From Octopus vulgaris (Eukaryota), in assembly GCA_951406725.2 (NCBI GenBank), contig OX597818.1:27796001-27858000 (forward strand): 62,000 bases of DNA, in the 5' to 3' direction. Below, one piece after another: positions 4,854 through 62,000 of this stretch. Under the pieces are notes generated by a model. The model searched no databases. It was not told where the DNA came from and saw nothing but the letters and a program-made list of their open reading frames with translations. Positions within the stretch are counted from its first letter, which is position 1; every line of letters starts with the position of its first letter. The translations under genes and the position numbers were made by a program.

Positions 4854-5102
4854 ATGTACCTGATATTATTGCATCAGAGAATATGACATTAATTGAGAAT
4901 CAAGCATCCATTGTAAACTGTTCTGCAAAAGGAAACCCTATCCCAGAAGTGAGGCTGGAATATGAAAATCAAAGTTTTCCTTCAAACTCCCCATTCACTT
5001 TTAATCGCAGAAATAGCAGTGATGTTTTCTGTGTTGCCAATGCAAAGAGCACAAAGCATGGAAATTTGACATCTAGAAAGAAAATTAATATCATGTTGAA
5101 AT
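4854..5102 (+). CDS. Ig-superfamily receptor, Ig-like exon 1 (first one found in the window): xVPDIIASENMTLIENQASIVNCSAKGNPIPEV...VFCVANAK...NIMLK
   Basis: Acceptor ttttttatag at 4853, donor gtatgt at 5103. 249 nt, phase 1-1. Has the Ig B-strand C-x-A-x-G-N-P-x-P motif and a second Cys. Confidence 0.85.
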
Positions 5103-5325: not shown

Positions 5326-5347
5326 GCTGCTGCTACTACTGCTGCTG

Positions 5348-5389
<42 letters not shown>

Positions 5390-7219: not shown

Positions 7220-7474
7220 ATCCTCCTCAAGTAAACATTCATATTTCAAATGAGACAAATAATACTTTACTAATTAATTGCACTGCATTTGATGGAAATC
7301 CAGAAAAATATGAATACAAACTGAAGCAAAAATGGGGAAACATCACTAAGAATACTTATAATATAAATGTATTATCAATAAATAATTCTACTTTCAATAA
7401 TACTGGTACATGGGAGTGTCATGTAAGCAATGAAGATTTTCATGTGAGTAAATCATCAAACTACAAAATTCCAG
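7220..7474 (+). CDS. Ig-like exon 2: YPPQVNIHISNETNNTLLINCTAFDGNPEKYEY...NNTGTWECHVSN...NYKIP
   Basis: Acceptor ctttttaag, donor gtaagt. 255 nt, open, phase 1-1. YPP start, C-x-x-x-D-G-N-P motif and an F-strand T-G-x-W-x-C. Confidence 0.9.
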
Positions 7475-9667: not shown

Positions 9668-9976
9668 TGAAACCTATTTTCAGTTCAATATCAAACGATG
9701 CGAAAAAGAAAAATGTTTCAATTGGAGAATCTGTAATTTTCAAACAGTGTTTTTATTCACATCCAAAATCTGATGTAAAATGGCAAATAAATGACAAATT
9801 AATTGACTTCAACAAATATTTAACAACTGATTTTGTATCAAGTGATTTTCCTTTCAAAGGAAGCTGTACTCATTTAAAAACAGAAGACATCAAAGATAAT
9901 GATATTAGAACTTATACCTTAACATTGGAAAACTCTGTAGGAAAAGAAGTGATAACTTTTACCTTGAGGCATAAAG
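9668..9976 (+). CDS. Ig-like exon 3 (membrane-proximal, non-canonical): VKPIFSS...GESVIFKQCFYSHPKSDVKWQ...DIRTYTLTLENSVGK...TLRHK
   Basis: Acceptor tttttccaccag, donor gtaagt. 309 nt, phase 1-1. Has the C-strand Trp. The F-strand reads YTLTLENSVG without the canonical Cys. Confidence 0.9.
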
Positions 9977-13597: not shown

Positions 13598-13699
13598 AAA
13601 TTACGGAAGTCACTTTGGGAACAATTATTGGTTGCTTTGTAGGAATTGTATTATTAATAACTTTGGTACTTCTTATTTATAAAAGCCACAAAATAAGAG
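13598..13699 (+). CDS. Transmembrane exon: EITEVTLGTIIGCFVGIVLLITLVLLIYKSHKIR
   Basis: Acceptor tcttttcag. About 23 hydrophobic residues followed by a basic stop-transfer segment. 102 nt, phase 1-1 using the gttggt donor at 13700; an alternative gtatgt donor lies at 13704. Confidence 0.88.
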
Positions 13700-32995: not shown

Positions 32996-33320
32996 CTGCA
33001 GTGACCACCAGAAAAGGGATCTCACAGAACCTACCACACACACACACACACACACACATTAAACATCCTCACACTATTCTGTCCCCAAAACCACTTTCTG
33101 TATCTCTTTCTACTTCTAGTCACTTAAGCAATGTAACTCTATCTGTGCCGTTGGTGATTTCTTTTCCTTCTTTGGACTTTTCCCTTTCTCCTTTCTGACT
33201 AAGAGCCACGTTTAAAATGGCAAACTGTCTCCTTTCCCCTAGCATCAAGCTAATACATTTCTTATGCATGTCCTCATGTTGTTTGTTTTTATTCTTTTCT
33301 TTGAATCTTTTGTTTATTCG

Positions 33321-33502: not shown

Positions 33503-33544
33503 GTGTTGTAGATTATTATGAGACTATTCCAGACAAACGTTACA
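33503..33544 (+). CDS. 42-nt tail exon: GVVDYYETIPDKRY
   Basis: Acceptor cttctctttaag, donor gtaagt. Phase 1-1, open. Carries a YETI tyrosine motif. Confidence 0.78.
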
Positions 33545-34459: not shown

Positions 34460-35400
34460 TAGGTTCTTCAGTTGTTGGGTGTATCACACTAATAGCATCT
34501 CTCCTCTCTAAGAACAATGGGATGTGGAAAAGGCCTTAATAATGAAGAAAAGTCTGTCATCATCAAGGAAAGTGCTAAAGACATCTCTCTTGATGTAATT
34601 GCAGAGAAGGTTAAGTCATCATGTGGATACAGCTAGGCGATTCCTGAAGGACCCATCACCAAGGAAGAAATGATTCAGTTGTGGGACCTCCAGGACTATG
34701 ACAGCTAGGGATTTAAGGAATATTAGCTGCAGGTTACATGAGAAACCTGGACAAACAAGCAAAGCCATTTTCACCACCTCTGGACTTCCTTATGTACCAA
34801 AAACCACCAGAAATCACATCCTTGGGACTATGATTTCCATGCAAGAACCCCTGAAACTGCCTCCTTTAGCGTCCTGTCACAGGAATTTGAAGCTTCAATG
34901 GGCCCAAGAGTACATGATGTTAGAAGGAGTTGTGTTCTGTTCACTGATGAAACCAGGACAACCCTTGAATGACCTGATGGTTGGTCAAATGGTTGGGTCT
35001 ATTTTGGAGATTAGCATCACCAACGTTTACAAAGTCCACAACATGGTGGAGGAGTCATGTTGTGGGCTGGTCTCATTTGGACAGACTTGTTGGCCCAGTC
35101 AGGGTGCCTGGAGAGCTTAAAGTGACTGTAGCTGCCTACTGCAATCTTTAAAAGGAGGTCTTAGATTCATGGGTAGATGACATACCACTTTCACTTCTAA
35201 GGAATCTCATATTCACGCATGACAACACTTCCTCCCACTCTGCTGGGACCATCCAAATATTACTAGGGTTTTACAGCATACACGGCGAAAGGCTGATGGG
35301 CTGCCAGCATCTCTGGGTCTCAACCCTATGGAAAATCTTTAGTCCATCATTAAACAAGATGTTTATGCTGATGAACACCAATTTACATAAAAAAAGTCTT
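34460..35400 (+). mobile_element. Decayed Tc1-like transposase
   Basis: TARDLRNISCRL...KLQWAQEYM, VLFTDET, HDNTSSHSA, LNPMENL*SIIKQ. Terminal repeats not resolved. Confidence 0.75.
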
Positions 35401-39330: not shown

Positions 39331-39372
39331 ATGCAGTAAGTGCAGATGCTACTAATTTATCCAAGCTAAAGA
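39331..39372 (+). CDS. 42-nt tail exon: NAVSADATNLSKLK
   Basis: Acceptor ttttcttttttaaag, donor gtaagt. Phase 1-1, open. Confidence 0.68.
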
Positions 39373-39440
39373 GTAAGTATAATTAATGTCATTAGCAAAT
39401 AGTATTTTATTTCTGAATTACATATATAATTAATATATAT

Positions 39441-43377: not shown

Positions 43378-43407
43378 ACATGGATGATGCTTATGTTAAT
43401 GTTCTAA
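43378..43407 (+). CDS. 30-nt B-like tail exon (B0): NMDDAYVNVL
   Basis: Acceptor ttttcttaaag, donor gtaagc. Phase 1-1. Homologous to the B exons, including the upstream atttatagccatg. Confidence 0.78.
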   Translation, partial: TWMMLMLMF

Positions 43408-43664: not shown

Positions 43665-43990
43665 ATAAGTGTGGCATGGCTGTATGGTAAGAAGCTTGCT
43701 TCCCTACAACTGCATGGCACCTTGGGCAAGATTCTTCTACTGTAGTCTCAGGCTGACCAAAGCCTTGTAAGTGGATGTGTAAGATGCAAACTAAAAGAAA
43801 CCCATTGTGTGTGCATCTATGTGTATGTGTGTTTGTGTGTGTGTGTGTGTTTCTCACCTCATCACTGCTTGACAACAGGTGTTGGTGTGTTTACATACTC
43901 ATAGTGGAGCAATTCAATAAAAGATGCTGATATATAAAGTACTAGGCTTAAAAAACATATAAAGTAAGTACTGGAGTTGACTTGTTACTT
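43665..43990 (+). mobile_element. Decayed tRNA-derived SINE upstream of exon A1
   Basis: Shares ggcatggctgtatggtaagaagcttgct, ccttgggcaag and aagtactaggctt with the 16203-16601 SINE. Confidence 0.7.
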
Positions 43991-44065
43991 TCTGTGCAAT
44001 ATCAATATATTTAAGAACCATCTCCCCAAACAATAAAGATGCCCACTTTTATTTCATTTTTAAAG

Positions 44066-44125
44066 CTGAGAGAGAACAAGATGCTGAAGATAGTGAGCCC
44101 AGATATTTATCTGTGAAACACCCAG
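44066..44125 (+). CDS. Tail exon A1: TEREQDAEDSEPRYLSVKHP
   Basis: ttttaaag acceptor, CAG|gtaagt donor. 60 nt, phase 1-1. Confidence 0.85.
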
Positions 44126-44367
44126 GTAAGTACAATCAATATTGTTAGTACATAGTATGATTTTTAAAATGATCTTAAAGAAAAACCAACAATCATGAAA
44201 TGTATATTCTCATTTAGTTTTTTAACATATTTCTACATGCATATGTGTGTGTGAGTGTGTTTGAGTCTATCTCATTAGTGTTTATTTTGGCAATATCACA
44301 ACAATACTAACATGATATAAATGTAATTTATAGCCATGATTTAAATTCTCGTATTAATTTCTTACAG

Positions 44368-44409
44368 ACACAGATGATATTTATGTCAATGTTTTAAGGA
44401 AACCTGATG
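44368..44409 (+). CDS. Tail exon B1: DTDDIYVNVLRKPD
   Basis: tttcttacag acceptor, G|gtaagt donor. 42 nt, phase 1-1. Confidence 0.85.
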
Positions 44410-44584
44410 GTAAGTACATAAGCAATCCATAAAAAAATCACATATTATATTTTATATTTAAGTATTGGTTTCTTATGTCAGGCTGCTAAGTTCTCTTCCT
44501 GTAAACAAACCAATACCCATTGTCAAGTGGTGATGGCAGTGGACAAGCACAAAGACATATATGCTCTCATATATATGTGTGTGT

Positions 44585-44624
<40 letters not shown>

Positions 44625-44657
44625 ATGGGTGTGTGTGTGTATATATATATTTCTTTT

Positions 44658-45385
44658 CGTCATTTAACTCCATTTTCTATGCTAGCATGGGTTGGATGGT
44701 TTGACCAGGGTCTGGGAAGCCAGAAGGCTGCACCAGGCTCCAGTCTGATCTGGCAGTGTTTCTACAGCTGGATGCCCTTCCTTACGCCAACCACTCTGTG
44801 AGTGTAATGGGTACTTTTTATGTGCCACTGGCATAGGGGCCAGAGGAGGCTGGCAACGTCAATGATCGGTTGGTGCCTTTTACGTGCTACCGGCATGGAA
44901 GCCAGTCAAGGTGGTGCTGGTATCAACCACATTCGGATGGAACTTTTTATGTGCCACCAGCACGGGTATCACAACTACAATTTCCATTTGATTTTCATTT
45001 TGATGTTGATGTACTTGATTCAATAGGTCTCCTCAGGCACAGCAGGTCACCCTACAATCCAAGGTACTTTTCAATGGGCTGGGGCTGGTTATACAAAACT
45101 AGTATAGGATACAGCTGTGAACTCACTTTATTTGCTGGGCCTTTGCAGTCAGAGCATATCTCAAGAGGTCTCAGTCTTTTGTCATTGCCTCTGTGAGGCC
45201 CAACGTTCGAAGGTCATGCTGGACCACTTCATCCCATGTCTTCTTGGGTCTACCTCTACTCTGGATTCCTTCAACTGTTTGGGAGTGGCACTTCTTTACA
45301 CATCTCTCCTCGTCCATCTGTAGTACATGACCATACCAACACAAACATCTCTTGCGTGCCACATCCTGTTCTTCTTATGTCCAAC
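44658..45385 (-). mobile_element. RTE LINE 3' fragment
   Basis: 3' UTR plus WYGHVLQMDEERCVKKC...GRPKKTW on the minus strand. Confidence 0.85.
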
Positions 45386-46676
45386 ATTACCCAGTGTAAG
45401 CTATGGACACATAAGAGGTGCAGCAATATCAAAGGAAGGCTAACTGGGAGGATAGTTTTTGTATGTGGCAGATGCTTAGGAGCAATAAATACTGAAAATG
45501 TGCAGAGAACAACTTCTGCCACATTCCAGGGAGAAAAACTAGAAGTAGTTAGCTTCCATTACCTAGGTGACCAAGTCAGTAGCAGGGGAGGGTGCACTGA
45601 AAGTGTACCTGCTAGAATAAGAATAGCCAGGGCAAAGTTCAGAGAGCACTTACCTCTGCCAGTGACAAAGGGCCTCTCACTCAGAGTAAAACGTAGACTG
45701 TATGAAGCATGTGTACAAACGGGCATGCTACATAGCAGTGAAACATGAGCCGTGACTGCTGAGGACATGCGTAAATTCACAAGGAATGATGTATGTGTAA
45801 TGTCAGTGTGCATACTTGACAGCGTGTGAGTACCTTGAGAGAAAAGTTGGACCTTAGAAGCATCAGATGTATTGTGCAAGAGAGGTGACTGCGATGGTAT
45901 GGTCACATGGCAAGAATGGATGAGGATAGCTGTGTGAAAAAGTGCTACACCCTAGCGGTTGAGGGAACCTGTGGAAAAAGTAGACTCAGGAAGACCTGGG
46001 ATGAGGTGGTGAAGCATGACCTTCGAACATTAAACCTCACCAAGGCAATGACTAGTGACTGAGACCTTTGGATGTATGCTGTGCTTGAGAAGACCTGGCA
46101 AGCCAAGTGAGACCATAAACTTGTGGCCTATGCCAGGGGTGTAACCAGCCCACTTATGTATACCTTTCCTTTATTGGATACTAAACACTGTTGACGCAAG
46201 TGAAATCGAAATTGAAATCAAATTTGAGGACTTGCATCCGTGCTTGTGGAGTGCTAAGAGCATCATCTGAGCATGATTGATGCCAGAGAAGTTGACTGGC
46301 TTCTGTGCTGGTGGCATGTAAAAAGCACCATTTGAGCATGATCATTACCAGCATTGCCTTACTGGAACGTGAAAAATCATTTGAGCAAGGTTGCTGCCAT
46401 TGCCGCTGGACTGGCTCCTGTTCAGGTGGCATGAAAAAAACACCATTTGAGCATGGCCATTGCCAGTAGTGCCTGACAGGCCCTCGTGCCAGTGGCTCAT
46501 AAAAGCACCCACTACACACTTGGAGTTGTTGGCATTAGGAAGGGAGGGCATCCAGCAGTAGAAACTCTGCCAGATCAGATTGGAGCCTGGTGCAGCCATC
46601 TAGTTCGCCAGTCCTCAGTCAAATTGTCCAACCCATGCTAGCATGGAAAGCGGGCGTTAAACGATGATGATGATGA
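45386..46676 (+). mobile_element. RTE LINE 3' fragment, head-to-head with the previous copy
   Basis: TQCKLWTHKRC...FHYLGDQ, then the 3' UTR ending cgttaaacgatgatgatg. Confidence 0.85.
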
Positions 46677-46992
46677 CACTTATATATTTATACATGTCTT
46701 TTTTACATGTTTGTGTCCTAAGACTGTGGCCATGCTGGGGTCTTCATTCAGTTTCCCTCGACCAAATTCACTCACACAACTTTCATTGGCCCAAGTCTAT
46801 AGTAGAATACACATGTTGTAGGACTTAACCCAGAACCACATGTTTCAGAAGTAGACTTCTTATGACAAATACACATCTGCAAAATGTTGAGAATGGCAAA
46901 ATCTCATAATATGTACAAGCAACTGCTGGTAGACAATCCTACTCAGTTTTGATATTCTACCCTTTTATTGGTCCTTACCTTTCATAATGCAG

Positions 46993-47033
46993 TATATAAG
47001 CACATATGTGATGAGAATCCATTATATGAATAA
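46993..47033 (+). CDS. Candidate terminal coding exon T: VYKHICDENPLYE*
   Basis: Pyrimidine-rich tract then taatgcag acceptor. The phase-1 frame is open to TAA and contains NPLY. The stop overlaps a locally repeated sequence, so it may be chance. Confidence 0.4.
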
Positions 47034-47813
47034 ACTAAATAATTATATGACTAATATTGAATACAATAGATGCTTGCCCACACATGAGACACAAAGTATT
47101 AAAGAGATATGCAATGGAGATGCCACATGTAAACAAACACTGGAACTGAATATAGAAAAAGGACAATGGAGTATATGCCATATTTCAGGAGTTCTTGCCC
47201 TTTTATCAGCACCTATCCAACCCATTAATCATCTACGAATTCATTGTTTGAATAACCACTATATCTAATTCATTGTTGGTTTACATCTGGCATATCAGGT
47301 ACGAATTGTTGTAACAAAATCACTGCTTTATTTATATGAATAAACTAAATAATTATATGACTAATTTTGAATGCAATAGATGCTTGCCTACACATGATAC
47401 ACAAAGTATTAAACAGATATGCAATGGTGAATGTGATCAGCTTTAGTTGTTGAGTATACAAAGTTACTCTCGCTTGTCGATTACTCTAGCAAGAAAGAAA
47501 CCTTAGAAACAATCTAATTTCTATAAATGTATTTGTGAGTGGCTACATCATCATTTTTAATTATCAGTTTAAATATTTAAGTGACAGAATCAGTACAATA
47601 TTGTACTCTAACATTGATGGAGTAAAAATTAGTGTCAATATATTCTGTGATCAAAGCCCATTGAGGTAAGAGACTGATAGATAAAGTACTAGGCTTAAAA
47701 ATGTATGTAAAGTAAGTGCTGAAGTTTACTTGTTACTTTCTGTGCAAAAGCAATATATTTAAAAACATTCTCCCCAAACAATAATGATGCCCACTTTTAT
47801 TTCACTTTTAAAG

Positions 47814-47873
47814 GTGAGAGAGAGCAAGATTCTGAAGATAGTGAGCCCAGATATTTACCTATGAAACACCCAG
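47814..47873 (+). CDS. Tail exon A2: GEREQDSEDSEPRYLPMKHP
   Basis: Intact aag acceptor and gtaagt donor. 60 nt, phase 1-1. Confidence 0.75.
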
Positions 47874-48113
47874 GTAAGTACAATCAATATTGTTAGTACA
47901 TAGCATGATTTTTAAAATGATCTTAAAGAAAAACCAACAATCATGGAATGTATATTCTCATTTAGTCTGTTAACATATTTCTACATGCATATATGTGTGT
48001 GTGAGTGTGCTTGAGTCCATGTCATTAGTGTTTATTATGGCAATATCGCAACAATACTAACATGATATAAATGTAATTTATAGCCATGACTTAAATACAT
48101 TGATTTCTCATAG

Positions 48114-48155
48114 ACATGAATGATGTTTATGTCAGTGTTTCAAGGAAACCTGATG
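48114..48155 (+). CDS. Tail exon B2: DMNDVYVSVSRKPD
   Basis: ttctcatag acceptor, gtaagt donor. 42 nt, phase 1-1. Confidence 0.75.
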
Positions 48156-48396
48156 GTAAGTGCATTAGCAATCCATAAAAAAATTACATGCACTGGAGCA
48201 AGAGTTAGCAAATATCATGGTTCAGTGTTTCATTAAGCAGTATAGTCAGTTTAATGTATGCCTTTTATCATTTACTTGTCTCAGTCATTGCACTGCAGCC
48301 ATGCCAATGCCTTGAAGGGTTTAGTTCAACAAATATTGGTTTATCATGCCAGACTGCTAAGCTCTCTTGATATAAAGAAACCAGTATCCATTATCA

Positions 48397-48704
48397 AGCA
48401 TCATCTGAACATGGCCAATACCAGTGCTGCCTTGACTGGCTTCTGTGCCAGTGGCACGTAAAAAGCACCAACCAATCGTGGCCGTTGCCAGCTTCACCTG
48501 GTACCTGTGCCGGTGGTACGTAAAAAGCACCCATTACACTCACGGAGTGGATGGTGTTAGGAAGGGCATCCAGCTGTAGAAACACTGCCAGATTAGACTG
48601 GAGCCTGGTGCAGCCTCCTTGCTTCCCAGACCCCAGTCGAACCGTCCAACCCATTTTAGCATGGAAAACGGACGTTAAACGATGATGATGATGATGAATG
48701 ATGA
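48397..48704 (+). mobile_element. RTE 3' UTR fragment, tail-to-tail with the large RTE
   Basis: Ends cgttaaacgatgatgatg about 15 nt before the minus-strand (CAT)n tail. Confidence 0.85.
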
Positions 48705-48717
48705 TATATTTTATATA

Positions 48718-51700
48718 CATCATCATCATCATCATCATCGTTTAGCGTCCGTTTTCCATGCTAGCATGGGTTGGACGGTTCTACTGGGGTCTGTGAAGCC
48801 AGAAGGCTTCATCAGGCCCAGTCAAATCTGGCAGTGTTTCTACGGCTGGATGCCCTTCCTAACGCCAACCACTCCGTGAGTGTAGTGGGTGCTTTTACGT
48901 GCCACCCGCACTGGTGCCAGACAGAGCTGGCAAACGGCCACGAACGGATGGTGCTTTTATGTGCCACCGGCACGAGGGCCAGGCGAGGCTGGCAACGGAC
49001 ACGAAACGGGGCGGTGCTGGCAACGGTCGCGAAACGGAAAGTTCTCTTACATGCCACCGGCACTGGTAACACATCTGCAATTTCCATTGATCGATTTCCA
49101 TTGATCGATTTCGATTCTGATCCTCACTTGCCTCAACGGGTCTTCACAAGCAGAGTTTCGACATGCCACCGGCACTGGTAGCACATCCGCAATTTCCATT
49201 GATCGATTTCGATTCTGATCCTCACTTGCCTCAACACATCTTCACAAGTAGAGTTTTGTGTCCCAAGAAGGGAAGGTATGCATACGTAGGCTGGCTCCAT
49301 CCCATGTAGAAGGCCACGGGTTATGGACTCACTTGTCCTGCCGGGTCTTCTCGCGCACAGCACACTTCCAGAGGTCTCGGTCTCTAGTCATTTCCTCAGT
49401 GAGACCTAAAGTTCGAAGGTCGTGCTTCACCACCTCGTCCCAGGTTTTCCTGGGTCTGCCTCTTCCACAGGTTCCCTCAACCGCTAGGGTGTGGCACTTT
49501 TTCACACAACTATCTTCATCCATTCTCGCCACATGACCATACCAGCGCAAACGTCTCTCTTGCACACCACAACTGATGCTTCTTAGGTCCAGCTTTTCTC
49601 TCAAGGTACTTACACTCTGCCGAGTGTGAGTACCGGCATTACACATCCATCGGAGCATACTGGCTTCATTTCTAGCGAGCTTACGCATATCCTCAGCAGT
49701 CACGGCCCATGTTTCACTGCCATGTAGCATGGCTGTTCGTACACACGCATCATACAGTCTGCCTTTCACTCTGTGCGAGAGGCCTTTTGTCACCAGCAGA
49801 GGTAAGAGCTCTCTGAACTTTGCCCAAGCTATTCTTACTCTAGCAGTTACACTTTCAGCACACCCGCCCCCGCTGCTGACTTGGTCACCTAGGTAACGGA
49901 AACTATCAACTATTTCTAGTTTTTCTCCCTGGAAAGTGACGGAAGTTGGTCTCAGAGCATTTTCAGTGTTTATTGTTCCTGAGCATCTGCCACATACAAA
50001 AACCATCTTCCTAGTTAGCCTTCCTTTGACATTGCTGCATCTCTTATGTGTCCATAGCTTACACTTGGTGCATCTTATAGAGTTTCTACCTACACCTTTT
50101 CTACAGATCGAGCAGGGCCATCTACCTGAAGGTGTTTGTGATTTGTCTACCTTCCTACTGATTACGACTTTGGTTTTAACTAGATTGACTCTGAGGCCCT
50201 TCGATTCTAATCCTTGTTTCCACACCTGAAACTTCTCCTCCAGTTCTGATAGCGACTCAGCAATTAGAGCAAGGTCATCAGCATAGAGGAGCTCCCAAGG
50301 GCATCCTGTCTTGAATTCCTCCGTTATTGCCTGGAGGACTATGATAAATAGGAGGGGGCTGAGTACTGAGCCTTGGTGGACTCCTACCTCTACCCGGAAT
50401 TCTTCACTGTACTCATTTCCAACCCTCATCCTACTAGCGGCGTCCCTATACATGGCCCGCACAGCTCTCACTAACCATTCATCTATCCCTAGTTTCCTCA
50501 TTGCCCACCAGGTAAGGGATCGGGGGACCCTGTCGAAGGCTTTCTCCATGTCAACAAAAGCCAGGTACAGGGGCTTATCTTTGGCTAGGTATTTCTCCTG
50601 CAGCTGCCTTACCAGGAATATAGCATCAGTAGTACTTTTCCCTGGCACAAACCCAAACTGCATCTCATCTAAACTAACTCTCTCTCTAATTAGTTGGGCT
50701 ATGACCCTCTCCGTAACCTTCATCACCTGGTCCAACAGCTTGATACCTCTGTAGTTATTTGTATCTAGGGCATCACCTTTACCTTTGTAGCAGTTGACTA
50801 TTATACTGCTACACCAGTCATTGGGTATGACCCCTTTGTGTATCACCTGATTAACTATACGGGTGACTAGGCATTTTGAGCATCTCTGCAGTGATTCCTG
50901 ATGGGCCTGGGGCTTTCCCTGTCTTCATGCTTCTAATTGCCTTAGCTACCACGGAACTATCAACTCGGATAGCTGGTCCCTCTGTTGGGTCAACATTTGG
51001 CAGACTCTCTTTATCCCATTCATTTTCTTCATTCAGCAACCTTTCATAGTGGCATCTCCAAACCTCTCTCTTTGCATCCTCATTTAGCGCAAGTGAACCA
51101 TCTTCCATGCGAACACACTTCTCTCCTACCACATCACGATTCTCTCTCACACACTGTCTTGCAACACGAAACACCTCCAGTCTTTGGTCCTCACGGCGCA
51201 GAACATTGGCAAATTTTTTCTTATCTGCTTCCCCTCTGGCTAAATAAACCTGTTTCCTAGCTTCTCTTTTGGCAGTCTGATACAATTCCCTGCTACCCCC
51301 ATTTTTCCAGACCTTCCAAGCCTGTCTCTTTTCTCTAATAGCCCTGTCTACAATATTGTTCCACCACCACGTTATTCTAGGTTGAGAGGGGACTTTGCAC
51401 CAGCCACAGATCTGGTCAGTGGCTCTCAGCAGGTTGTCCCTTAGAAACGTCCAGCTGTCTTCTACCCCCTGTGATGCTCTATCCCCTTCTACTTCGTCAG
51501 AGGCTTCAAGTAATATGTCCCTAAATCTCTGTCCATTTGCAGGATCTTTAAGCTTCCAGATCCTTCTTCTCCATATTTGTCGTCTTCTGGTTGTCCTCCT
51601 AGTCCTGATCCTAAAGTCACTAACTACCAGTCTATGTTGTGGGGTACATTCTTCACCTGGGAAGGTTTTGGCATTTATAAGCAGCCATCTCTCCCTTTGC

Positions 51701-52284
51701 CTTGTAAGGATGTAGTCAATTTGGCTGGTATGTTGGCCCGATTGGTAAGTGACTAGGTGGCTGGTAGGTTTCCTGAAGTTAGTGTTGCAAATCATAAGAT
51801 TATTTGCATCGCAGAACTCCAGCAGCCTGGTTCCCTCCTCGTTGCGGGAGCCATAGCCATAGCCTCCATGTACGCCATGGAAGCCCCCAGCATGTCGTCC
51901 AACGTGACCATTGAAGTCACCAGCCACAAAGATAAGGTCTCTGTCGTTCGTCAACGAGGTAGTCTGCAGTAGAGTGTCATAGAATCGGTCTTTCTGTCCA
52001 TCGGGTAGCCCCGACTGAGGAGCATAGGCTGATATAATGGTTGCTAAACTATGATGAAGCACTAATCTAATCTTAAGTATTCTGTCACATACTCTGATTA
52101 CCTCAATTACTTTATCTACCCATTTCTCAGCGATAAGTATACCCACGCCACCAACCCCGTCAGTGTTCCCTGCCCAGAAAATCTTGTACCTGCGTTCCTT
52201 GCCTGTGAGGAACCTAGCTGATCCTCCTCTCCACCTTATTTCTTGCATGCAACATATATCCACACATCTCCGTTCAAGCATCTC

Positions 52285-52287
<3 letters not shown>
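48718..52287 (-). mobile_element. Near-full-length young RTE-clade LINE (APE endonuclease and RT), slightly 5'-truncated, one frameshift
   Basis: ORF 50851-52281 has CMQEIRW, AYAPQSG, AGDFNGHV, QIDYIL and HRLVV. ORF 49329-50846 has YRGIKLL, FVDMEKAFD, HQGSVLSP, YADD and YLG. No stops within either ORF. Confidence 0.95.
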
Positions 52288-52331
<44 letters not shown>

Positions 52332-52612
52332 CTTTTCCTTCTAAATGTGGAGTATATGAAACAGGTACATCTAAAGAAAGGGAGTATTCTTTATGTTGTA
52401 TGTCTCATTTCTCTGTTTTTTTAATAATTGTTCGAAAAAGTTCATTTCTATGGTTTTGCTTTTATGTTTCCATTTCTCATTCTGTTCCACGTTTTTTCGA
52501 TGTCCTGTACCCATATATGCATGTATGTAGGTATGTGCATATATGTAGGTATATGCATATATGTAGGTATGTACATATATGTATGTATATATGCATATAT
52601 TTATATACTATT

Positions 52613-52653
<41 letters not shown>

Positions 52654-52689
52654 AAATAAAAAAAAGGAAAATACACACACTTACATAGT

Positions 52690-53262
52690 TTTAATATAAT
52701 TTTTAATATATCAACCGGTTTCGCTATCGCTATTCATGATATTATGTTTTACTTATTTGAATATATATTTTTTCTTAAGAAGAAATTTTGTCCATATTGA
52801 GTGTGATGAAATTCACGAGTGAATGACTTCACAAGTAGATAAATAAAGGGAGGTAATTGGTTGTCGTTATTATTGTTATTGTTGTGGGTAAGGGAGATAA
52901 CTCTTTAGCTTTCGGTAATGGGTGGAGATTAGATATGTGTACAGACAGAGACAAGTTTCAAAAACCTTGTTTAGTAGGGGATTTATGTACAGTGATGTAA
53001 TTGTGAATTGAAATACGTAAAAAGATAAAAGTTGGTTATGCATGCATATTTAGATGTGTTTTGTATTTTTCAATGAAAAAAGTTTCTTTATTTAAACGTT
53101 CCAGTTGAGAGATTGCGTCTTTGCACTGGTAGAAAGGGAAGACTGTGAAATTTGGTTTGAGGTTACCTGCACATTTTTCTATATGTTCACTGTATTGTGG
53201 GAAATGGATTTGCTCAAGGTCATACTTGATTGTCCAATATAGTGGTGTCCGCAACACGAGCA
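52690..53262 (-). mobile_element. Penelope-like element 3' fragment (GIY-YIG C-terminus)
   Basis: QIHFPQYSEHIEKCA...FTVFPFYQ...KETFFIEKYKTHLN, and gaaaccggtt in the downstream terminal region. Confidence 0.6.
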
Positions 53263-53329
53263 GGTTATTACATAAATTAGAAAGTTTTTCGAAAATCTTA
53301 ACCTAAGTATTACTTATGAATATAACACT

Positions 53330-55000
53330 AAGATAGTTAATTTTTTAGATACTACTTTAGATTTAAACTCGAAATTGAATTACCCATATAGGAAAGATGG
53401 TGAAATTACTAGATATGTGAATAAATTATCAAATCACCCCCAAATATATTGAAATCGATAGTTAAAAGTATTTCGAGAAGAATTACTAAATTATCATCTA
53501 ACAATGAAATTTTTAATTCCCATTCATATCATTACAATGATACCTTGGCTAGAGCAGGATATAACCAAGAAATTGCCTTCCTCGATCTTGAGAATCTAAC
53601 ACTTTCAAATAAGAAAATGAATAAAAATAGCTCAAATAATATAAAATCTTCAAATTTAAACAAATATGAATCAACCCAAACCGATAACCTATCATATAAA
53701 TCTGATACAAATAGCAGAAATAGCGGACAAGACACAAATAGGTATAAAAAACTTAAGTTAAATAAAATAAATGTAAATGAAAATCTAAAAATTACTCCTA
53801 CTGATAAAAAACCCCAATAAATATATATATATAAGACTGAAAATAATAACAAAATTCTTAGGAATATAGATAGCACTAATCTATCCCACCCTTACTTAAA
53901 TAAGAAATTCAAAAATAAAAATATCATATGGTTGAATATACCTTTCAACTAGGTAATATCTACGAATATATATAGCAAATTTATGTCCATATTAGAAACA
54001 AACTTCCCTACTTCCCATAAATATAATGAAATATTTTCTCGTAAAACAGTTAGAATATCATACTCTACTCTACCAAATATAAGTACCATCATAACTAAAT
54101 TAAATAGAAAAAATATTAAACTAGCCAGAAATGTTGGAAATAACAATAATAATAATAATAAAGGTAAAGATAATAATAATACTAATAATGATAATATTAA
54201 TATAAACAATAATAATAATTATAATAATAATATCAATAATAACATTAATAATGAGAATGATACTAACAATAATAATAGAAATAAAAATAATAATTATATG
54301 AATAGAAATAAAAATAATAAGATATTTCTACTAATGAAAATAATATTATTGAAATTGACGAGGTGCATGATATAAATGATATTAGGACCAATAATATAAA
54401 TGTTATTGAATACAGTTCCAGTACATATGAATGCATAGATACTACTTGTATACCCGATGGTAATAAAATAAACTTATTTGATAAGACAGTAGAGGAAAAA
54501 TTAGAAACTAATAGTCAAAACCATAACTTACCTAATAATATAATTATAGATAATGATGAAACTCTTAATGTTAATAATGGTTTTAATAACAATAATAAAA
54601 GCAACTTATTTCCAAATAATACTAATATCAAAAATCATTCCCCTAGTTGTAATTGTAGAACTAAGTCCCACTGTCCGGTATCTGGTCCAAAACGTATTAC
54701 ATAAATATACAGTAATGACTTCAACAAATAACTATATTTACTTTGGTTGCACAATAGATCTGAAGAAATGTATAAACAATTACAATTCATCCTTTAGACT
54801 TAAACTTAAGGCAAGTTGCACAACATTATCTAATAAAATTTGGGAGTTAAAAGAAAATAAAATTAGATTAGCCTTAAATGAGACATAGTAAAAAAAATAG
54901 TAGAGATGGATGTGAGCTTTGCTCTAAGGAGATATATGAAATTTTGAAACATAGGGATAATTTAAACTTATTAAATAACCATTTTGAACTGGGAGTATTG
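53330..55000 (+). mobile_element. Decayed Penelope-like element (RT thumb, Asn-rich linker, GIY-YIG)
   Basis: SRRITKLSSNNEIFN...LARAGY, IIWLNIPF, VRISYSTLPNI, CNCRTKSHCP, YIYFGCT, LSNKIWELKE. Confidence 0.85.
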
Positions 55001-55342
55001 TGTATATATTGTACTACTTGTACATTTAAATATTTTTAAAAATAGCATTCTGTTATTCCTAAATTTTAGATCTTAATGTTTTTTATAAATCAATAAGGAA
55101 ATAGCATACCCTGCTACTTTTTAGTATTTAATAAGAAATAGTTATTAAGAAATTTTAATAACGTAAGCAAATTGAATAAAGTTAAATAAAATTTTTTAAA
55201 TTTCTATAATACATAAATTCTATATATCTAATGAAGTTATTAAGTTGTATACTTACTCCACAATAAGTTTTAAAGATTTGGTAATTTTCATATCTATTTC
55301 TGCGAGAATTCTACTCCACCTAATCATTTTCAATATTATAAA

Positions 55343-56490
55343 CTATAACTGGTTGAAGTCCTTTATTTTCGGCCGAAAAGAGGTTGTCACAGTTCTAGGA
55401 CAGCACTCTTCACCCTATGAGATGACATCTGGTGTACCACAGGGATCTGTTGTTGGCCCCCTTTTATTTGTTGCATATGTTAATGACATAGATGCCAACT
55501 TAAAGAATGCCACAGTGCTGAAATATGCAGATGACATGAAGCTATACCTCGAAATAAAGAGGTCAGATCCTGTACACTATAGATCTCTATTGCAAGCAGA
55601 CCTGGACACAATGCAGCAGTGGATCATGGACTGGCAACTCAAGCTGGCTGTAGACAAATGTACCACCATGCATTTTGGGAGGAGAAACCCAGAATCCACC
55701 TATTCCCTCCACAACACTAATCTCAAAAAGTCTTCGTGTGAACGTGACCTGGGTGTTATTGTCGACAGTGATTTGCGTTGGACAAAAGACATCACTAAAA
55801 TTGTCAAGAAGGCTGAGGGTGTCTTGGCATCACTCACCAAATCCTTTGTGAGCTGCTCTCTGACTATCTATCTGCGGCTTTATATAGCTATGGTAAGACC
55901 TCACCTGGAATTTGCATCACCGATCTGGAACTCCTATCTTGCCCAGGATATCAATCGTCTGGAAGCCGTTCAGTGACGTGCAACCAAAAGAATACCATCC
56001 ATCAGGCATTTGCCATATTCTGAATGCCTTACTTTCCTGGGCATGGACACATTGAAACTCCGACGTCTGGCAGCTGACTTGGCAGACACCCATAAAATTA
56101 TCAACCATCTTACAAACGATAACTCTGATCACCTTTTCAAACTCCACCCATCTAACACCCGTGGACATATTTACAAAGTCAGAAAACAGCACAGCTCCCA
56201 TGACTTTAGGAAACATTTTTTCACGCTGGGAGTTGCTGAAGCATGGAACAAACTGCCGGCATCGGTTGTTAGTTGTCGGAGCACTGCATCCTTCAAAACT
56301 TCCATGCTTTCTGAGATTCACCAACACTACACCTGATTTCCTCCCCTTCATACACACACAAGCATGTATCTGATTCATACATTGTTCGCTTTCCAGGCAT
56401 TTGTACATTACTGCATACATTTATACACACATTCTGACAAGTTGTGGTGCACCTGAGCACTGTATGCAATAATTTCATTATTATCATTAC
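55343..56490 (+). mobile_element. 5'-truncated CR1-clade LINE
   Basis: SGVPQGSVVGPLLF, KYADDMKLY, ERDLGVIVD, VRPHLEFASPIW, one stop at 55974, then RRLAADL...TRGH...WNKLP and an AT-rich tail. Confidence 0.88.
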
Positions 56491-57167
56491 TTATGTTTTC
56501 AGAAATTATCTTTCAAAGCATTAATGACATCTAGAGACAAGGCCTTTTGTTAACCAAACACAATAGAGTACAAAGTATATTAAACCATTTTATAAGTCCG
56601 CACTACTGAGGTAGCTGTGCACTTAAATAATGTGTTCAGGTCATCTCTACCGTTTTTCTGTAGGAATTACAACCAGCATTGATTTCATTATGACATTTCG
56701 TATCTGAGATGTCACGTAAACAAACACTGGAACTGAATATAGAAAAAAGGGAATGGAGTATATGCCATATTTCAGGAGTTTTTGCCCTTTTATCAGCACC
56801 TATCCAACCCTTTAATCATCCATGAATTCATTGTTTGAATAACCACTATATTTAATTCATTGTTGGTTTACATCTGGTATGAAATGTTGTAACAAAATCA
56901 CTGCTGTATTTATACGAATAAACTAAATAATTATATGACTAATATTGAATGCAATAGATGCTTGCCTACATAGGATACACAAAGTATTAAACAGATATGC
57001 AATGGTGAATGTGATCAGCTTTAGTTGTTGAGTATCCAAAGTTACTCCTGCTTCTTGATTACTCTAGCAAGAAGGAAACCTTAGAAACAATCTAATTTTT
57101 ATAAATGTATTTGTGAATGGCTACATCATCATTTTTAATTGTCAGTTTATATATTGAAGTGACGGAA

Positions 57168-57298
57168 TCATCATCATCATCATCATCATCATTTAACGTC
57201 CGCTTTCCATGCTAGCATGGGTTGGACGGTTCAACTGGGGTCTGGGGAGCCCGAAGGCTGCACCAGGCCAGTCAGATCTGGCAGTGTTTCTACAGCTG
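57168..57298 (-). mobile_element. RTE 3' tail fragment replacing part of one duplication unit
   Basis: (CAT)n tail and palindrome, truncated at tacagctg and joined directly to aggtgagagactg. Absent from the sister units. Confidence 0.8.
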
Positions 57299-57448
57299 AG
57301 GTGAGAGACTGATAGATAAAGTACTAGACTTAAAAATGTATATAAAGTAAGTGCTGAAGTTTACTTGTTACTTTCTGTGCAAAAGCAATATATTTAAAAA
57401 CATTCTCCCCAAACAATAAAGATGCCCACTTTTATTTCACTTTTAAAG

Positions 57449-57508
57449 GTGAGAGAGAGCAAGATTCTGAAGATAGTGAGCCCAGATATTTACCTATGAA
57501 ACACCCAG
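57449..57508 (+). CDS. Tail exon A3: GEREQDSEDSEPRYLPMKHP (no B partner)
   Basis: Intact splice sites. The downstream intron is rearranged after about 20 nt. Confidence 0.6.
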
Positions 57509-58364
57509 GTAAGTACAATCAATATTGTACAATCATAATGCAGTATATAAGCACATATGTGATGAGAATCCATTATATGAATAAACTAAATAATTATATG
57601 ACTAATATTGAATACAATAGATGCTTGCCCACACATGAGACACAAAGTATTAAAGAGATATGCAATGGAGATGCCACATGTAAACAAACACTGGAACTGA
57701 ATATAGAAAAAGGACAATGGAGTATATGCCATATTTCAGGAGTTCTTGCCCTTTTATCAGCACCTATCCAACCCATTAATCATCTACGAATTCATTGTTT
57801 GAATAACCACTATATCTAATTCATTGTTGGTTTACATCTGGCATATCAGGTACGAATTGTTGTAACAAAATCACTGCTTTATTTATATGAATAAACTAAA
57901 TAATTATATGACTAATTTTGAATGCAATAGATGCTTGCCTACACATGATACACAAAGTATTAAACAGATATGCAATGGTGAATGTGATCAGCTTTAGTTG
58001 TTGAGTATACAAAGTTACTCTCGCTTGTCGATTACTCTAGCAAGAAAGAAACCTTAGAAACAATCTAATTTCTATAAATGTATTTGTGAGTGGCTACATC
58101 ATCATTTTTAATTATCAGTTTAAATATTTAAGTGACAGAATCAGTACAATATTGTACTCTAACATTGATGGAGTAAAAATTAGTGTCAATATATTCTGTG
58201 ATCAAAGCCCATTGAGGTAAGAGACTGATAGATAAAGTACTAGGCTTAAAAATGTATGTAAAGTAAGTGCTGAAGTTTACTTGTTACTTTCTGTGCAAAA
58301 GCAATATATTTAAAAACATTCTCCCCAAACAATAATGATGCCCACTTTTATTTCACTTTTAAAG

Positions 58365-58424
58365 GTGAGAGAGAGCAAGATTCTGAAGATAGTGAGCCCA
58401 GATATTTACCTATGAAACACCCAG
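58365..58424 (+). CDS. Tail exon A4: GEREQDSEDSEPRYLPMKHP
   Basis: Intact splice sites. 60 nt, phase 1-1. Confidence 0.72.
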
Positions 58425-58664
58425 GTAAGTACAATCAATATTGTTAGTACATAGCATGATTTTTAAAATGATCTTAAAGAAAAACCAACAATCATGGAAT
58501 GTATATTCTCATTTAGTCTGTTAACATATTTCTACATGCATATATGTGTGTGTGAGTGTGCTTGAGTCCATGTCATTAGTGTTTATTATGGCAATATCAC
58601 AACAATACTAACATGATATAAATGTAATTTATAGCCATGACTTAAATACATTGATTTCTCATAG

Positions 58665-58706
58665 ACATGAATGATGTTTATGTCAGTGTCTCCAGGAAAC
58701 CTGATG
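58665..58706 (+). CDS. Tail exon B4: DMNDVYVSVSRKPD
   Basis: Intact splice sites. Two synonymous differences from B2 (GTC TCC vs GTT TCA). Confidence 0.72.
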
Positions 58707-59413
58707 GTAAGTGCATTAGCAATCCATAAAAAATATTACATGCACTGGAGCAAGAGTTAACAAATATCATGGTTCAGTGTTTCATTGGGTAGTATAGTCA
58801 GTTTAACTTATGCCTTTTATCTTTTACTTGTTTCAGTCATTGCACTGCAGCAATGATAATCCCTCAACTTGGACAAATATTGGTTTCTCATGCCAGACTG
58901 CAAAGCTCTCTTGATATATATAAACCTCGCTAAAGTGACATCAACTGTGCTTGTGCTACGTAAAAGGCATTAAGTCCACTCTGTTGAGTGGTTGGTTTTA
59001 AGAAGGGATTCCAGTTGTAAACATCCTGCCAAATGACTTACAGAATTCTAGTGCAGTCTTCAACCTGATCTGCATTTGTCAAACTGTCCGACTTGTGCCA
59101 GGATGGAATGCGTACAGTAAATGACGAGGATGAGGATGTTGATGATATAATTATGTTCATACAATAGGGTACTTTCAGTTTCTTTCTGCCAAATCCATTT
59201 ATGAGGTTTTTGTTGGCCTGAAGCTTTAGAAGAAAATGCAATGTGAATGTGGTTGGGAAGCTAGCTGCTTATCACACAGTAATACCCGTGCCTATGTATG
59301 TTTGTATATAAATTATAGAACTTATTTTTTTGGTTTCTTTCTATGCAGCATCAAACATTTAAAACATACTCTGCAAACAATAAATATGCCCATTTTTATA
59401 TAATGTCTTGTAG

Positions 59414-59473
59414 ATGTGAAAGAGCAGCATGCTGAAGGTAGTAAGCATGAATATGTATATATAAAAGAACTGG
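59414..59473 (+). pseudogene. Diverged A-type exon with dead donor: DVKEQHAEGSKHEYVYIKEL
   Basis: tcttgtag acceptor, 60 nt, open. Flanks are homologous to the A exon flanks, but the donor reads G|ggaagt instead of G|gtaagt. Confidence 0.65.
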
Positions 59474-60406
59474 GGAAGTGCTATAAATATTGTTAGTACA
59501 CAGCATGATTTCTGAAATTATCTTAAAAAATTTAATGACATGCAGAGACAAGGTGTTTTGTTAACCAAACATAATAGAGTACAAAGTATATTAAACCATT
59601 TTATAAGTCAATATCATGTACTACTGAGTTAGCTGTGCTCTTAAATCTCGTGTTCAGGTCATCTCTACTATTTTTCTTTTGGAATTATAACCAGCATTGA
59701 TTTCGTTATGACATTTGGTATATGAGATGCCACATGTAAACAAACACTGGAATTGAATATAGAAAAAGGACAATGGAATATATGCGATATTTTAGCAGTT
59801 TTTGCCCTTTTATCAGCACCTATCCAACCTTTAATCATCCATGAATTCGTTGTTTGAATAACCACTATATCAAATACATTGTTGGTTTACATCTGGTATG
59901 AAATGTTGTAACAAAATCACTGCTGTATTTATACGAATAAACTAAATAATTATATGACTAATATTGAATGCAATAGATGCTTGCCTACACATGATACACT
60001 AAGTATTAAACAGATATGCAATGGTGAATGTGATCAGCTTTAGTTGTTGAGTATCCAAAGTTACTCTCGCTTGTTGATTACTCTAGCAAGAAAAAAACCT
60101 TAGAAACAATCTAATTTCTATAAATGTATTTGTGAGTGGCTACATCATCATTTTTAATTATCAGTTTAAATATTGAAGTGATGGAATCAGTACAATATTG
60201 TACTAAACATTGATGGAATAAAAATTAGTGTCAATATATTCTGAGGTCAAAGTCCATTGAGGTGAGAGACTGATATATAAAGTATTAGGCTAAAAGTATA
60301 TATAAAGTATGTCCTGAAGTTTACTTGTTACTTTCTGCGCAATAACAATATATTAAAACATTCTCCCCAAACAATAAAGATGCCCACTTTTATTTCATTT
60401 TTAAAG

Positions 60407-60466
60407 CTGAGAGAGAACAAGATTCTGAAGATAGTGAGCCCAGATATTTACCTATGAAACACCCAG
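60407..60466 (+). CDS. Tail exon A5: AEREQDSEDSEPRYLPMKHP
   Basis: Intact splice sites. 60 nt, phase 1-1. Confidence 0.75.
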
Positions 60467-60710
60467 GTAAGTACAATCAATATTGTTAGTACATAGCATG
60501 ATCTTTAAAATGATCTTAAAGAAACACCAACAATCATGAAATGTATATTCTCATTTAGTCTGTTAACATATTTCTACACGCATATATGTGTGTGTGAGTG
60601 TGTTTGAGTCCATGTCATTAGTGTTTATTATGCTAATATCACAAAAATACTAACATGATATAAATGTAATTTATAGCTATAACATAAATACTTGCATAAA
60701 TTTCTCATAG

Positions 60711-60752
60711 ACGTGGATGATGTTTATGTCAGTGTTTCAAGGAAACCTGATG
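60711..60752 (+). CDS. Tail exon B5: DVDDVYVSVSRKPD
   Basis: ttctcatag acceptor, gtaaat donor. 42 nt, phase 1-1. Confidence 0.72.
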
Positions 60753-61604
60753 GTAAATGCATTAGCAATCCATAAATAAATTACATGCACTGGAGCAAGA
60801 GTTAGCAAATATCATGGTTCAGTGTTTCATTGAGCAGTATAGTCAGTTTAATTTATGCCTTTTATCACTTGTTTCAGTCATTGCACTGCAGCAATGATAA
60901 TGACTCAAGTGGAACAAATATTGGTTTCTCATGCCAGACTGCAAAGCTCTCTTGATATATAAAAACCTTGCTAAAATGACCACACCTCTGCTTGAGCCAC
61001 GTAGAAAGCATCAAGTCCACTCTGCTGAGTGGTTGGTTTTAAGAAATGTCTAAGTACTCTCGATATTGTTAGTACACAGCTTGATTTCAGAAAGTATCTT
61101 TAAAAAATATTGCCCCAGCATGGCCGCAGCCTTCAGACTGAAACATTTTAAAGGATTTTAAAGATTTATGTAGAAACAAGGTGTTTTGTTAATCAAACAT
61201 AACATACTCCAATGTATATTAAACCATTTTATAAGTCAATATCATGTACTACTAAGTTAGCTATACGCCTAAATCACGTTTTAAGGTCATCTCTACTGTT
61301 TTTCTTTTGGAATTATAACCAGCTTTGATTTTGTTATGACATTTCGTATCTGAGATGCCACATGTAAACAAACACTAGAATTGAATATAGAAAAAGGACA
61401 ATGGAATATATGCCGTATTTCAGGAGTTTCTGCCCTTTTATCAGCACCTATCCAACCCATAAATTATTCATGAATTCATTGATGGAATAACCATTATATC
61501 TAATAATTCATTGTTGGTTTACATTTGGCATATCAGGTATGAAATGTTGTAACAAAATCACTGCTTGAATACAAAGATGGAGACCAAACACAAAGACATA
61601 TACA

Positions 61605-61643
<39 letters not shown>

Positions 61644-61645
<2 letters not shown>

Positions 61646-62000
61646 TCATCATCATCATCATCATTTAGCGTCCGCGTTCCATGCTAGCATGAGTTGGACG
61701 GTTCAACTGGGGTCTGTGAAGCTGGAAGGCTTCGTCAGGCCCAGTCAGATCTGGCAGTGTTTCTACGGCTGGATGCCCTTCCTAACGCCAACCACTCCGT
61801 GAGTGTAGTGGGTGTTTTTTATGTGCCACCTGCTCAGGTGCCAGACAGAGCTGGCAAACGGCCACGAATGGATGGTGCTTTTACGTGTCACCGGCACGGG
61901 GCCAGGCGATGCTGGCAACGGACACGAACGGATGGTGCTTTTACGTCCCACCGACACGGGGCCACACAGAGCTGGCAAACGGCCACGAACGGATGGTGCT
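61644..62000 (-). mobile_element. RTE LINE 3' end with about 60-bp UTR tandem repeats, runs off the window
   Basis: (CAT)n tail after (TA)n; close match to 48718-49020. Confidence 0.9.

Follow-up and report, generated by a model that had tools for sequence, protein, structure and literature searches.

The 62,000-nucleotide (nt) window analyzed here (Octopus vulgaris, assembly GCA_951406725.2, contig OX597818.1, positions 27,796,001 to 27,858,000) carries on its + strand part of a type I immunoglobulin (Ig)-superfamily receptor gene whose cytoplasmic tail is encoded by tandemly duplicated mini-exons of two types, A (60 nt) and B (42 nt). The modules are frame-neutral and can be gained, lost or skipped, and their number differs between Octopus species in protein models. 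The best explanation, which we consider probable, is an Ig receptor tail built of duplicated phase-1 mini-exons whose tyrosines are putative PI3K/Grb2-type docking sites.

Frame-neutral mini-exons encode the receptor tail

A script located five A exons and four B exons in the window DNA (Table 1), confirming the coordinates and AG/GT borders given in a preliminary description of this sequence. AG immediately precedes every exon and GT comes directly after it; all donors read GTAAGT with the exception of B4 (GTAAAT). The introns within pairs A1–B1, A2–B2, A4–B3 and A5–B4 measure 242, 240, 240 and 244 nt, in agreement with the shared 240–244 nt intron described before, and the conceptual peptides match exactly those reported. 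The first pair encodes EREQDAEDSEPRYLSVKHP followed by DTDDIYVNVLRKPD, and the subsequent pairs encode EREQDSEDSEPRYLPMKHP followed by D[MN/VD]DVYVSVSRKPD. The A type has an acidic lead and then Y-L-x-M/V, while the B type reads D-x-D-D-x-Y-V-N/S-V-x-K-P-D. Every A and B exon holds two bases of a split codon at its start and one at its end (phase 1-1), and the frame is thus kept whatever the order of the modules. With this design, modules can be added, lost or skipped without a frame break.

The array starts further upstream than the preliminary description had placed it, with two B-type exons and an unused B-like exon, B0, ahead of A1. B0 is used in neither of the RefSeq models XP_036359227.1 and O. 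bimaculoides P0016. It had also been stated that no open reading frame (ORF) longer than about 20 codons marks these exons, but the stop-free stretches surrounding the A exons are 47–153 codons long. Intact frames and splice sites alone are not beyond chance for copies that have diverged by only 0.6–10%. We regard the A and B units as real exons because an independent RefSeq coding sequence uses them.

Reading through an A-exon donor gives ...HPGKYNQYC and a stop (44126–44152), at the same position after every A exon. The RefSeq protein of one paralog, P0007, has a similar C-terminus, ...KPAGKYKQYC, and that of another, P0003, corresponds to read-through of a B donor. A short, intron-retaining terminal isoform may be a conserved feature, judging by these C-termini.

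The host gene is an annotated Ig-superfamily receptor

The coding sequence in question, XP_036359227.1 (labeled P0011; 'uncharacterized protein LOC115212116', Octopus sinensis, 1220 amino acids (aa)), was found by a tail-directed homolog search. Up to A1, the spliced in-window model is identical to it at 342 of 344 residues (99.4%), with AG/GT at all borders, and the two tails correspond module for module. The tail of XP_036359227.1 consists of A1-B1-A2-B2 and then three more pairs of A and B modules of the REQ type. Annotators had been expected to miss these exons, but this entry already includes A1-B1-A2-B2, further pairs and even micro-exons of 19 and 17 nt. The presence of such micro-exons suggests that the RefSeq model rests on transcript alignments. 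Mapping XP_036359227.1 onto the window located both micro-exons as well as the two B-type exons upstream of A1.

Besides the tail modules and the micro-exons, the window contains three Ig exons and a transmembrane (TM) exon. The gene product is a type I membrane protein with many Ig domains, the N-terminal ones being encoded upstream of the window. Pfam I-set, Ig_3 and ig matches in the three exons and in XP_036359227.1, a single TM segment and a tail behind a basic stop-transfer signal define it as a type I Ig-superfamily receptor. The Pfam Ig domains and the near-identity to XP_036359227.1 bear out the earlier proposal of a cephalopod, here Octopus, receptor of this superfamily. PDB matches of the receptor are to generic IgCAM only, and a Pfam scan of the tail found no family. 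One Pfam match, MHB at residues 918–946 of XP_036359227.1, was rejected as a repeat artifact. An Rfam search of the window returned nothing, and neither did an NCBIfam search.

Near-identity of the ectodomain, TM segment, micro-exons and first tail modules assigns the gene to the orthogroup of LOC115212116 and LOC106879981. The window contains the 3′ two-thirds of an Octopus gene that is orthologous or allelic to LOC115212116 and orthologous to LOC106879981 of O. bimaculoides (XP_052824250-54, 'uncharacterized protein'). Besides the identity up to A1, the O. sinensis gene has its micro-exons and the opening A1-B1-A2-B2 of its tail in common with the window. It differs in that the window carries an additional, orphan A exon as well as minor substitutions, and in that the O. 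sinensis model continues into the apparent tail of a neighboring paralog. The ortholog LOC106879981 differs in having only two REQ-type pairs. Compared with O. bimaculoides P0016, the window gene is 90% identical over the Ig part and 76.5% identical over the A-B pairs, with every tyrosine retained. The RefSeq LOC115212116 model (O. sinensis CM016863.1) spans ~780 kb with LOC115212119 nested inside it, and the LOC106879981 gene range is ~258 kb.

The array grew by recent tandem duplication

Self-alignment of the window revealed direct repeats of ~2 kb. Positions 46982–48382 and 57533–58926 are 97.8% identical, with three differing positions in a 520-nt core, and positions 57668–59004 and 59724–61045 are 92.1% identical. 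Unit 1 (43921–44443) is ~90% identical to the other units. A ~2-kb unit comprises A, the 240-nt intron, B and then a decaying older A-type exon, A′. Each full unit contains this decayed exon, which is similar to the A exon of the EEQHAE type located behind the REQ pairs of the RefSeq protein. The A3 unit is cut off 20 nt into the A-B intron, where the next unit takes over with its 5′ part. A repeat-filled gap (48.4–56.5 kb) with ~8 kb of retroelements separates units 2 and 3. Another unit starts at 61168, and the window lacks the tail exons that come next in RefSeq; the array therefore continues past base 62000.

The ~2-kb unit has been copied in tandem by unequal recombination. The process is recent and ongoing, since the units differ by only ~0.6–10%, one of them is truncated and a young long interspersed nuclear element (LINE) sits inside the array. 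An assembly artifact was considered for the near-identical units 2 and 4 and rejected, as the O. sinensis assembly independently has two consecutive pairs with identical peptides. The two copies also differ by indels and have a distinct junction.

The preliminary description had proposed a tail that grows by tandem duplication of a two-exon module, and both the self-alignment and the species comparison uphold it. Protein models give two REQ-type A-B pairs for LOC106879981 of O. bimaculoides and five for LOC115212116 of O. sinensis. The window itself has four pairs and a solitary A, and its array has not ended at the window edge. Written as module strings, the tails read BABABAABAB (window), BABABABABABB... 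(O. sinensis) and ABABBABB (O. bimaculoides). After its two REQ-type pairs, the O. bimaculoides tail has the same B(NSG)-A(EEQHAE)-B-B end (isoforms X1–X5). The smaller number of pairs in O. bimaculoides supports the view that tandem duplication has lengthened the tail in the sinensis/vulgaris lineage.

An octopod receptor family with mosaic tails

A homolog search with the conceptual protein returned Octopus proteins only, and a word-indexed search for the tail modules matched Octopus spp. and Argonauta hians, with nothing outside octopods. The receptor appears from these matches to be a member of a clustered multigene family that is so far confined to octopods. Related Ig receptor loci number at least nine in O. 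sinensis/'vulgaris' and O. bimaculoides, with one in Argonauta hians. None of the family loci has a functional name, and literature searches on the locus name and on cephalopod Ig receptors with immunoreceptor tyrosine-based activation or inhibitory motifs (ITAMs or ITIMs) found nothing relevant.

Family tails combine the two module types without a fixed order, for example BAABBABAABAB, BAAABBA, ABAAABAABA and BABB. At one paralogous locus (L001), the tail of P0004 is likewise encoded by separate 60-nt and 42-nt phase-1 exons, including three A exons of identical peptide 3–5 kb apart. For two O. bimaculoides genes, what sets the RefSeq isoforms apart is exactly one module (14 or 20 aa) or an alternative ...GDYQ end. 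Isoform X5 of LOC106879981 lacks only DIDDVYDSVSREPE, and in LOC106874069, isoforms X3, X4, X5 and X8 are each missing single modules of 14 or 20 aa. The modules thus act like cassette exons.

The C-termini of P0009 and P0038 (Argonauta hians) have the form ...C(N/V)YA(E/D)L...x18-19...TIYAD(L/I). This pair resembles an immunoreceptor tyrosine-based switch motif (ITSM) and an ITIM, is SIRP-alpha-like and is kept between Octopus and Argonauta. By these motifs, the P0009/P0038 branch may consist of inhibitory-type receptors.

Tail tyrosines resemble PI3K and Grb2 docking sites

Conserved positions were tallied over 32 A and 39 B module types family-wide. In A modules, a tyrosine occupies position 14 in 30 of 32; the +1 residue is L in 24 and the +3 residue is M in 21 (L in 7, V in 2, I in 1). 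In B modules, the tyrosine is at position 6 in 32 of 39, followed by N at +2 in 30, and +3 is V in 17, I in 12 and D in 5. The positions conserved across the family, Y-L-x-M in A and Y-x-N in B, look like the SH2 signatures of p85 and Grb2, respectively. YxxM binds PI3K through p85 and YxNx binds Grb2 (PMC2193818). The leads of the modules are strongly acidic (D-x-D-D, E-D-S-E). Within the window, A2–A5 carry YLPM and fit YxxM, while A1 has YLSV; B1 and the unused B0 carry YVNV and fit YxN, while B2–B4 have YVSV. The first pair is YLSV plus YVNV. The amplified pair, YLPM plus YVSV, retains the p85-type site and has S in place of the Grb2-type N.

From these motifs we infer phosphorylation of the tail and a role in SH2 docking. 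Receptor clustering would lead to phosphorylation of the tail tyrosines in their acidic context, and the phosphotyrosines would serve as independent SH2 docking sites. A sites, of the YxxM type, would recruit the p85 subunit of PI3K, and ancestral B sites, of the YxN type, would recruit Grb2/Drk. How many docking sites a receptor carries would depend on genomic copy number together with cassette splicing.

Several findings weigh against this interpretation. The amplified B copies, with YVSV, lack the N that defines a Grb2 site, and A1, with YLSV, lacks the M. Among units, divergence is 2–13% in exons and 0.2–10% in introns, so the exons are no better conserved, and most exon changes between units 1 and 2 are non-synonymous (hand count from the alignment). 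The young copies therefore show no signal of purifying selection. The O. bimaculoides pair count was taken from protein models and not from genomic DNA, and skipped exons could hide copies. Finally, the last ~190 residues of XP_036359227.1 are almost the same as the tail of P0032, the product of a different gene with Ig exons unlike those of the window. The ~780-kb O. sinensis model is, by this likeness, probably chimeric at its 3′ end, fusing two neighboring paralogs.

The divergence pattern is what would be expected if the young copies were by-products of recombination-prone, repeat-rich introns, present in gene models but mostly skipped or redundant, with a copy number that has no signaling meaning. 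The orphan A3, the unused B0 and the decayed A′ copies fit such birth-and-death turnover, as do a module of O. sinensis in which Y has become F (DMDDVFVSV) and the transposable elements inserted inside the array. We nevertheless consider this explanation unlikely, as the module cores (AEDSEPRYL, KHPD-DD-YV-V) are 76% identical between O. bimaculoides and the window gene with all tyrosines kept, and the same module types persist in many paralogs.

The tyrosines might instead act unphosphorylated, as YxxPhi sorting or endocytosis motifs of the AP-2 mu2 type or as another linear motif not bound by SH2, in which case the repeats would tune trafficking and not signaling. YxxPhi is a class of endocytic signal, and YLSV, YLPM, YVNV and YVSV all fit Y-x-x-hydrophobic. 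YxxPhi does not need the acidic leads or the family-wide N at +2 and M at +3, which are features of SH2 specificity, and it would be unusual for a single tail to hold a dozen sorting signals or more. We regard a sorting role as distinctly improbable.

The modules do not fit the ITAM definition

The published ITAM consensus is Yxx[I/L]-x6-9-Yxx[L/I], that is, D/E/NxxYxxL/I-x7-YxxL/I (PMC4536121; doi 10.1101/2022.03.04.482883). The preliminary description had interpreted each A-B pair as an ITAM-like cassette. Each pair would then be bidentate and recruit a tandem-SH2 kinase (Syk/Shark), and the array would be an independently evolved multi-ITAM chain like CD3-zeta. All four pairs do carry YxxV/M-x8-YxxV with E at −3, a relaxed version of the motif ([ILVM]), and their two tyrosines lie in two exons. 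A molluscan ITAM-Syk pathway also exists, as described for oyster CgIgR-CgSyk (PMC6994640). A regular expression of the strict consensus, however, gave no match in 12 tails (the window tail and 11 family tails) holding well over 100 tyrosines, and the +3 residue is L or I in just 8 of 32 A and 13 of 39 B modules.

Gene structure also speaks against ITAMs. In every classical ITAM, an exon border splits the first tyrosine module (PMC4536121), whereas the A-B border lies after ...YLPMKHP, six residues past the first tyrosine and between modules. The x8 spacing is explained as a by-product of exons of fixed length, with the tyrosine as residue 14 of the 20 in A and as residue 6 of the 14 in B; A-A junctions in paralogs give the same spacing. 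Paralogs show A-A, A-A-A, B-B and B-B-B orders, so the A-B pair is not an obligate unit, and single-module skipping likewise indicates that the modules are independent. We therefore do not retain the ITAM comparison, and kinase recruitment by A-B pairs seems to us quite improbable. The ITIM consensus, [I/L/V/S]xYxx[I/V/L], has no match in the window tail, where the −2 residues are P or D.

A broader proposal gets a lower probability still and is best treated as a long shot. Octopods would have independently evolved an expandable phosphotyrosine tail in which a tandem-SH2 effector (Syk/Shark, or p85 through its two SH2 domains) binds A-B pairs or successive YLPM sites in a bidentate manner. The signal would be tuned in evolution by pair copy number and physiologically by cassette splicing, a convergent analog of multi-ITAM chains.

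Comparison with known receptor tails

Classical ITAM chains (CD3-zeta, FcR-gamma, CD79) share with the octopus tail an acidic residue at −3, two tyrosines ~11 residues apart in two exons and several copies per tail. The octopus modules differ in having V or M, not L or I, at +3, in an exon border that leaves the first YxxL/I module unsplit (PMC4536121) and in shuffling freely. Moreover, ITAM chains are short signaling subunits with a charged TM residue, while the octopus chain has an Ig ectodomain of its own. By analogy, the tail would resemble multi-site docking tails (ErbB3, IRS, CD28/DAP10) more than an ITAM chain.

The nearest functional analogs would be multi-site YxxM/YxN docking tails, and the nearest gene design that of PECAM-1 (CD31). 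To our knowledge, the tail exons of PECAM-1 are not tandem duplicates of one another. Docking tails such as CD28 (YMNM), ICOS (YMFM), DAP10 (YINM), ErbB3 and IRS likewise have repeated motifs in an acidic, probably disordered tail, with the N at +2 and M at +3 that are conserved in the octopus family (motif meaning, PMC2193818). The octopus tail belongs to an Ig receptor and gives every motif a duplicated mini-exon to itself; its youngest B copies are without the N, and docking is putative. PECAM-1 is also an Ig-superfamily receptor with an alternatively spliced cytoplasmic domain, in which loss of the tyrosine-bearing exon 14 abolishes SHP-2 binding (PMC5664058). It carries ITIMs, whereas the window tail has none, and the sequence relation between the two is limited to generic Ig domains.

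Oyster CgIgR and Hydractinia Alr are invertebrate Ig-superfamily receptors with tyrosine signaling motifs in divergent tails; clustering and alternative splicing are further traits of the Alr family (PMC6994640; doi 10.1101/2022.03.04.482883). Their motifs are consensus ITAMs or ITIMs, unlike those of the octopus family, and the available parts of these reports make no mention of tandem mini-exon amplification.

The octopod family offers a clear, datable example of a receptor tail lengthened via tandem duplication of frame-neutral mini-exons, with a copy number that differs between sister lineages and with predicted single-module splice variants. If the tyrosines are true docking sites, the family would be a natural receptor series with 2, 4, 5 or more sites for relating site number to signaling, and would give a first handle on receptor-proximal tyrosine signaling in cephalopods. 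A tail growing by tandem duplication, the core of the preliminary description, is a real finding fairly named. Its weight is below the earlier estimate, as the gene is already annotated and the ITAM analogy fails.

Table 1. Features of the window (positions count from its first base; aa, amino acid)
Feature	Position	Strand	Remarks
Ig-domain exon, 249 nt, phase 1-1	4854..5102	+	AG/GT; weak Pfam I-set/ig matches below curated cut-offs; 98.8% aa identity to XP_036359227.1 residues 494-575
Ig-domain exon, 255 nt, phase 1-1	7220..7474	+	AG/GT; Pfam Ig_3 E=6e-6; matches XP_036359227.1 residues 577-662
Ig I-set exon, 309 nt, phase 1-1	9668..9976	+	AG/GT; Pfam I-set E=3.7e-7, above curated cut-off; 100% identity to XP_036359227.1 residues 660-763
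Transmembrane exon	13598..13699	+	EITEVTLGTIIGCFVGIVLLITLVLLIYKSHKIR; 24-residue hydrophobic run, then basic stop-transfer (KSHKIR); 33/34 residues as in XP_036359227.1
19-nt micro-exon (AVKCKK-)	18695..18713	+	AG/GT; joined to the 17-nt micro-exon gives AVKCKKDISSAK, exactly as in XP_036359227.1
17-nt micro-exon (-DISSAK)	25080..25096	+	AG/GT; restores the frame after the 19-nt micro-exon
B-type 42-nt tail exon	33503..33544	+	GVVDYYETIPDKRY; AG/GT, phase 1-1; 100% identity to XP_036359227.1 residues 810-823
B-type 42-nt tail exon, tyrosine lost	39331..39372	+	NAVSADATNLSKLK; AG/GT, phase 1-1; matches XP_036359227.1 residues 824-837
B0, 30-nt B-like exon	43378..43407	+	DMDDAYVNVL; AG/GT; exon and upstream intron align with B exons
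A1 exon	44066..44125	+	(T)EREQDAEDSEPRYLSVKHP; XP_036359227.1 residues 838-857
B1 exon	44368..44409	+	DTDDIYVNVLRKPD; YVNV fits YxN; XP_036359227.1 residues 858-871
A2 exon	47814..47873	+	GEREQDSEDSEPRYLPMKHP; YLPM fits YxxM; XP_036359227.1 residues 872-891
B2 exon	48114..48155	+	DMNDVYVSVSRKPD; XP_036359227.1 residues 892-905
Near-intact LINE	49329..52281	-	ORFs of 476 and 505 aa; Pfam Exo_endo_phos_2 and RVT_1, E=1e-31; inside the array between units 2 and 3
A3 exon, orphan without B	57449..57508	+	Unit broken 20 nt into the A-B intron; no counterpart in XP_036359227.1 tail
A4 exon	58365..58424	+	Sequence identical to A2
B3 exon	58665..58706	+	Peptide as B2, two synonymous changes
Decayed A′-type pseudo-exon	59413..59475	+	EQHAEGSKHEYVYIKEL; donor lost (GGGGAAGT); resembles EEQHAEVNEPEYLCMEEL exon of XP_036359227.1
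A5 exon	60407..60466	+	AEREQDSEDSEPRYLPMKHP
B4 exon	60711..60752	+	DVDDVYVSVSRKPD; donor GTAAAT; same peptide as XP_036359227.1 residues 960-973
5′ part of a further repeat unit	61168..61565	+	87.7% identity to 59540-59924

Repeats and transposable elements in the window

The near-intact LINE consists of an endonuclease ORF (476 aa) and a reverse transcriptase (RT) ORF (505 aa) with a PHD-like finger, with one stop between them. Related, older LINE fragments occur in introns at 19264–20052, 31928–33021, 39908–41350 and 45389–46189. The intron before the B-type exon that has lost its tyrosine contains, on the + strand, a pol fragment of a long terminal repeat (LTR) retrotransposon with RNase H and integrase zinc-finger matches (37358–39024), and a weak helix-turn-helix fragment of a Tc1/mariner-type transposase (34674–35117).

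A repeat of ~300 nt that resembles a short interspersed nuclear element (SINE) occurs in both orientations at 20381–20690, 28911–29067, 39419–39745, 44657–44923, 46397–46676, 48396–49009 and 61624–62000, with internal tandem subrepeats of 60–62 nt at 48888–49005 and 61840–62000. It flanks several units of the array and could be a substrate for unequal recombination.

Simple repeats are also present. An almost perfect (ATG)n microsatellite of ~1.4 kb (23198–24592) lies in the long intron between the TM exon and the tail exons; in translation its + strand gives poly-Met and its − strand poly-Ser. A CTG/GCT-type trinucleotide repeat (5127–5393) starts ~25 nt past the donor of the first Ig exon in the window and produces spurious poly-L/S/A frames. 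Asn-rich, AT-rich open frames at 53449–54888 (+), with an (AAT)n-like repeat at 54139–54320, adjoin an RT fragment (55245–55976) and may represent a decayed element.

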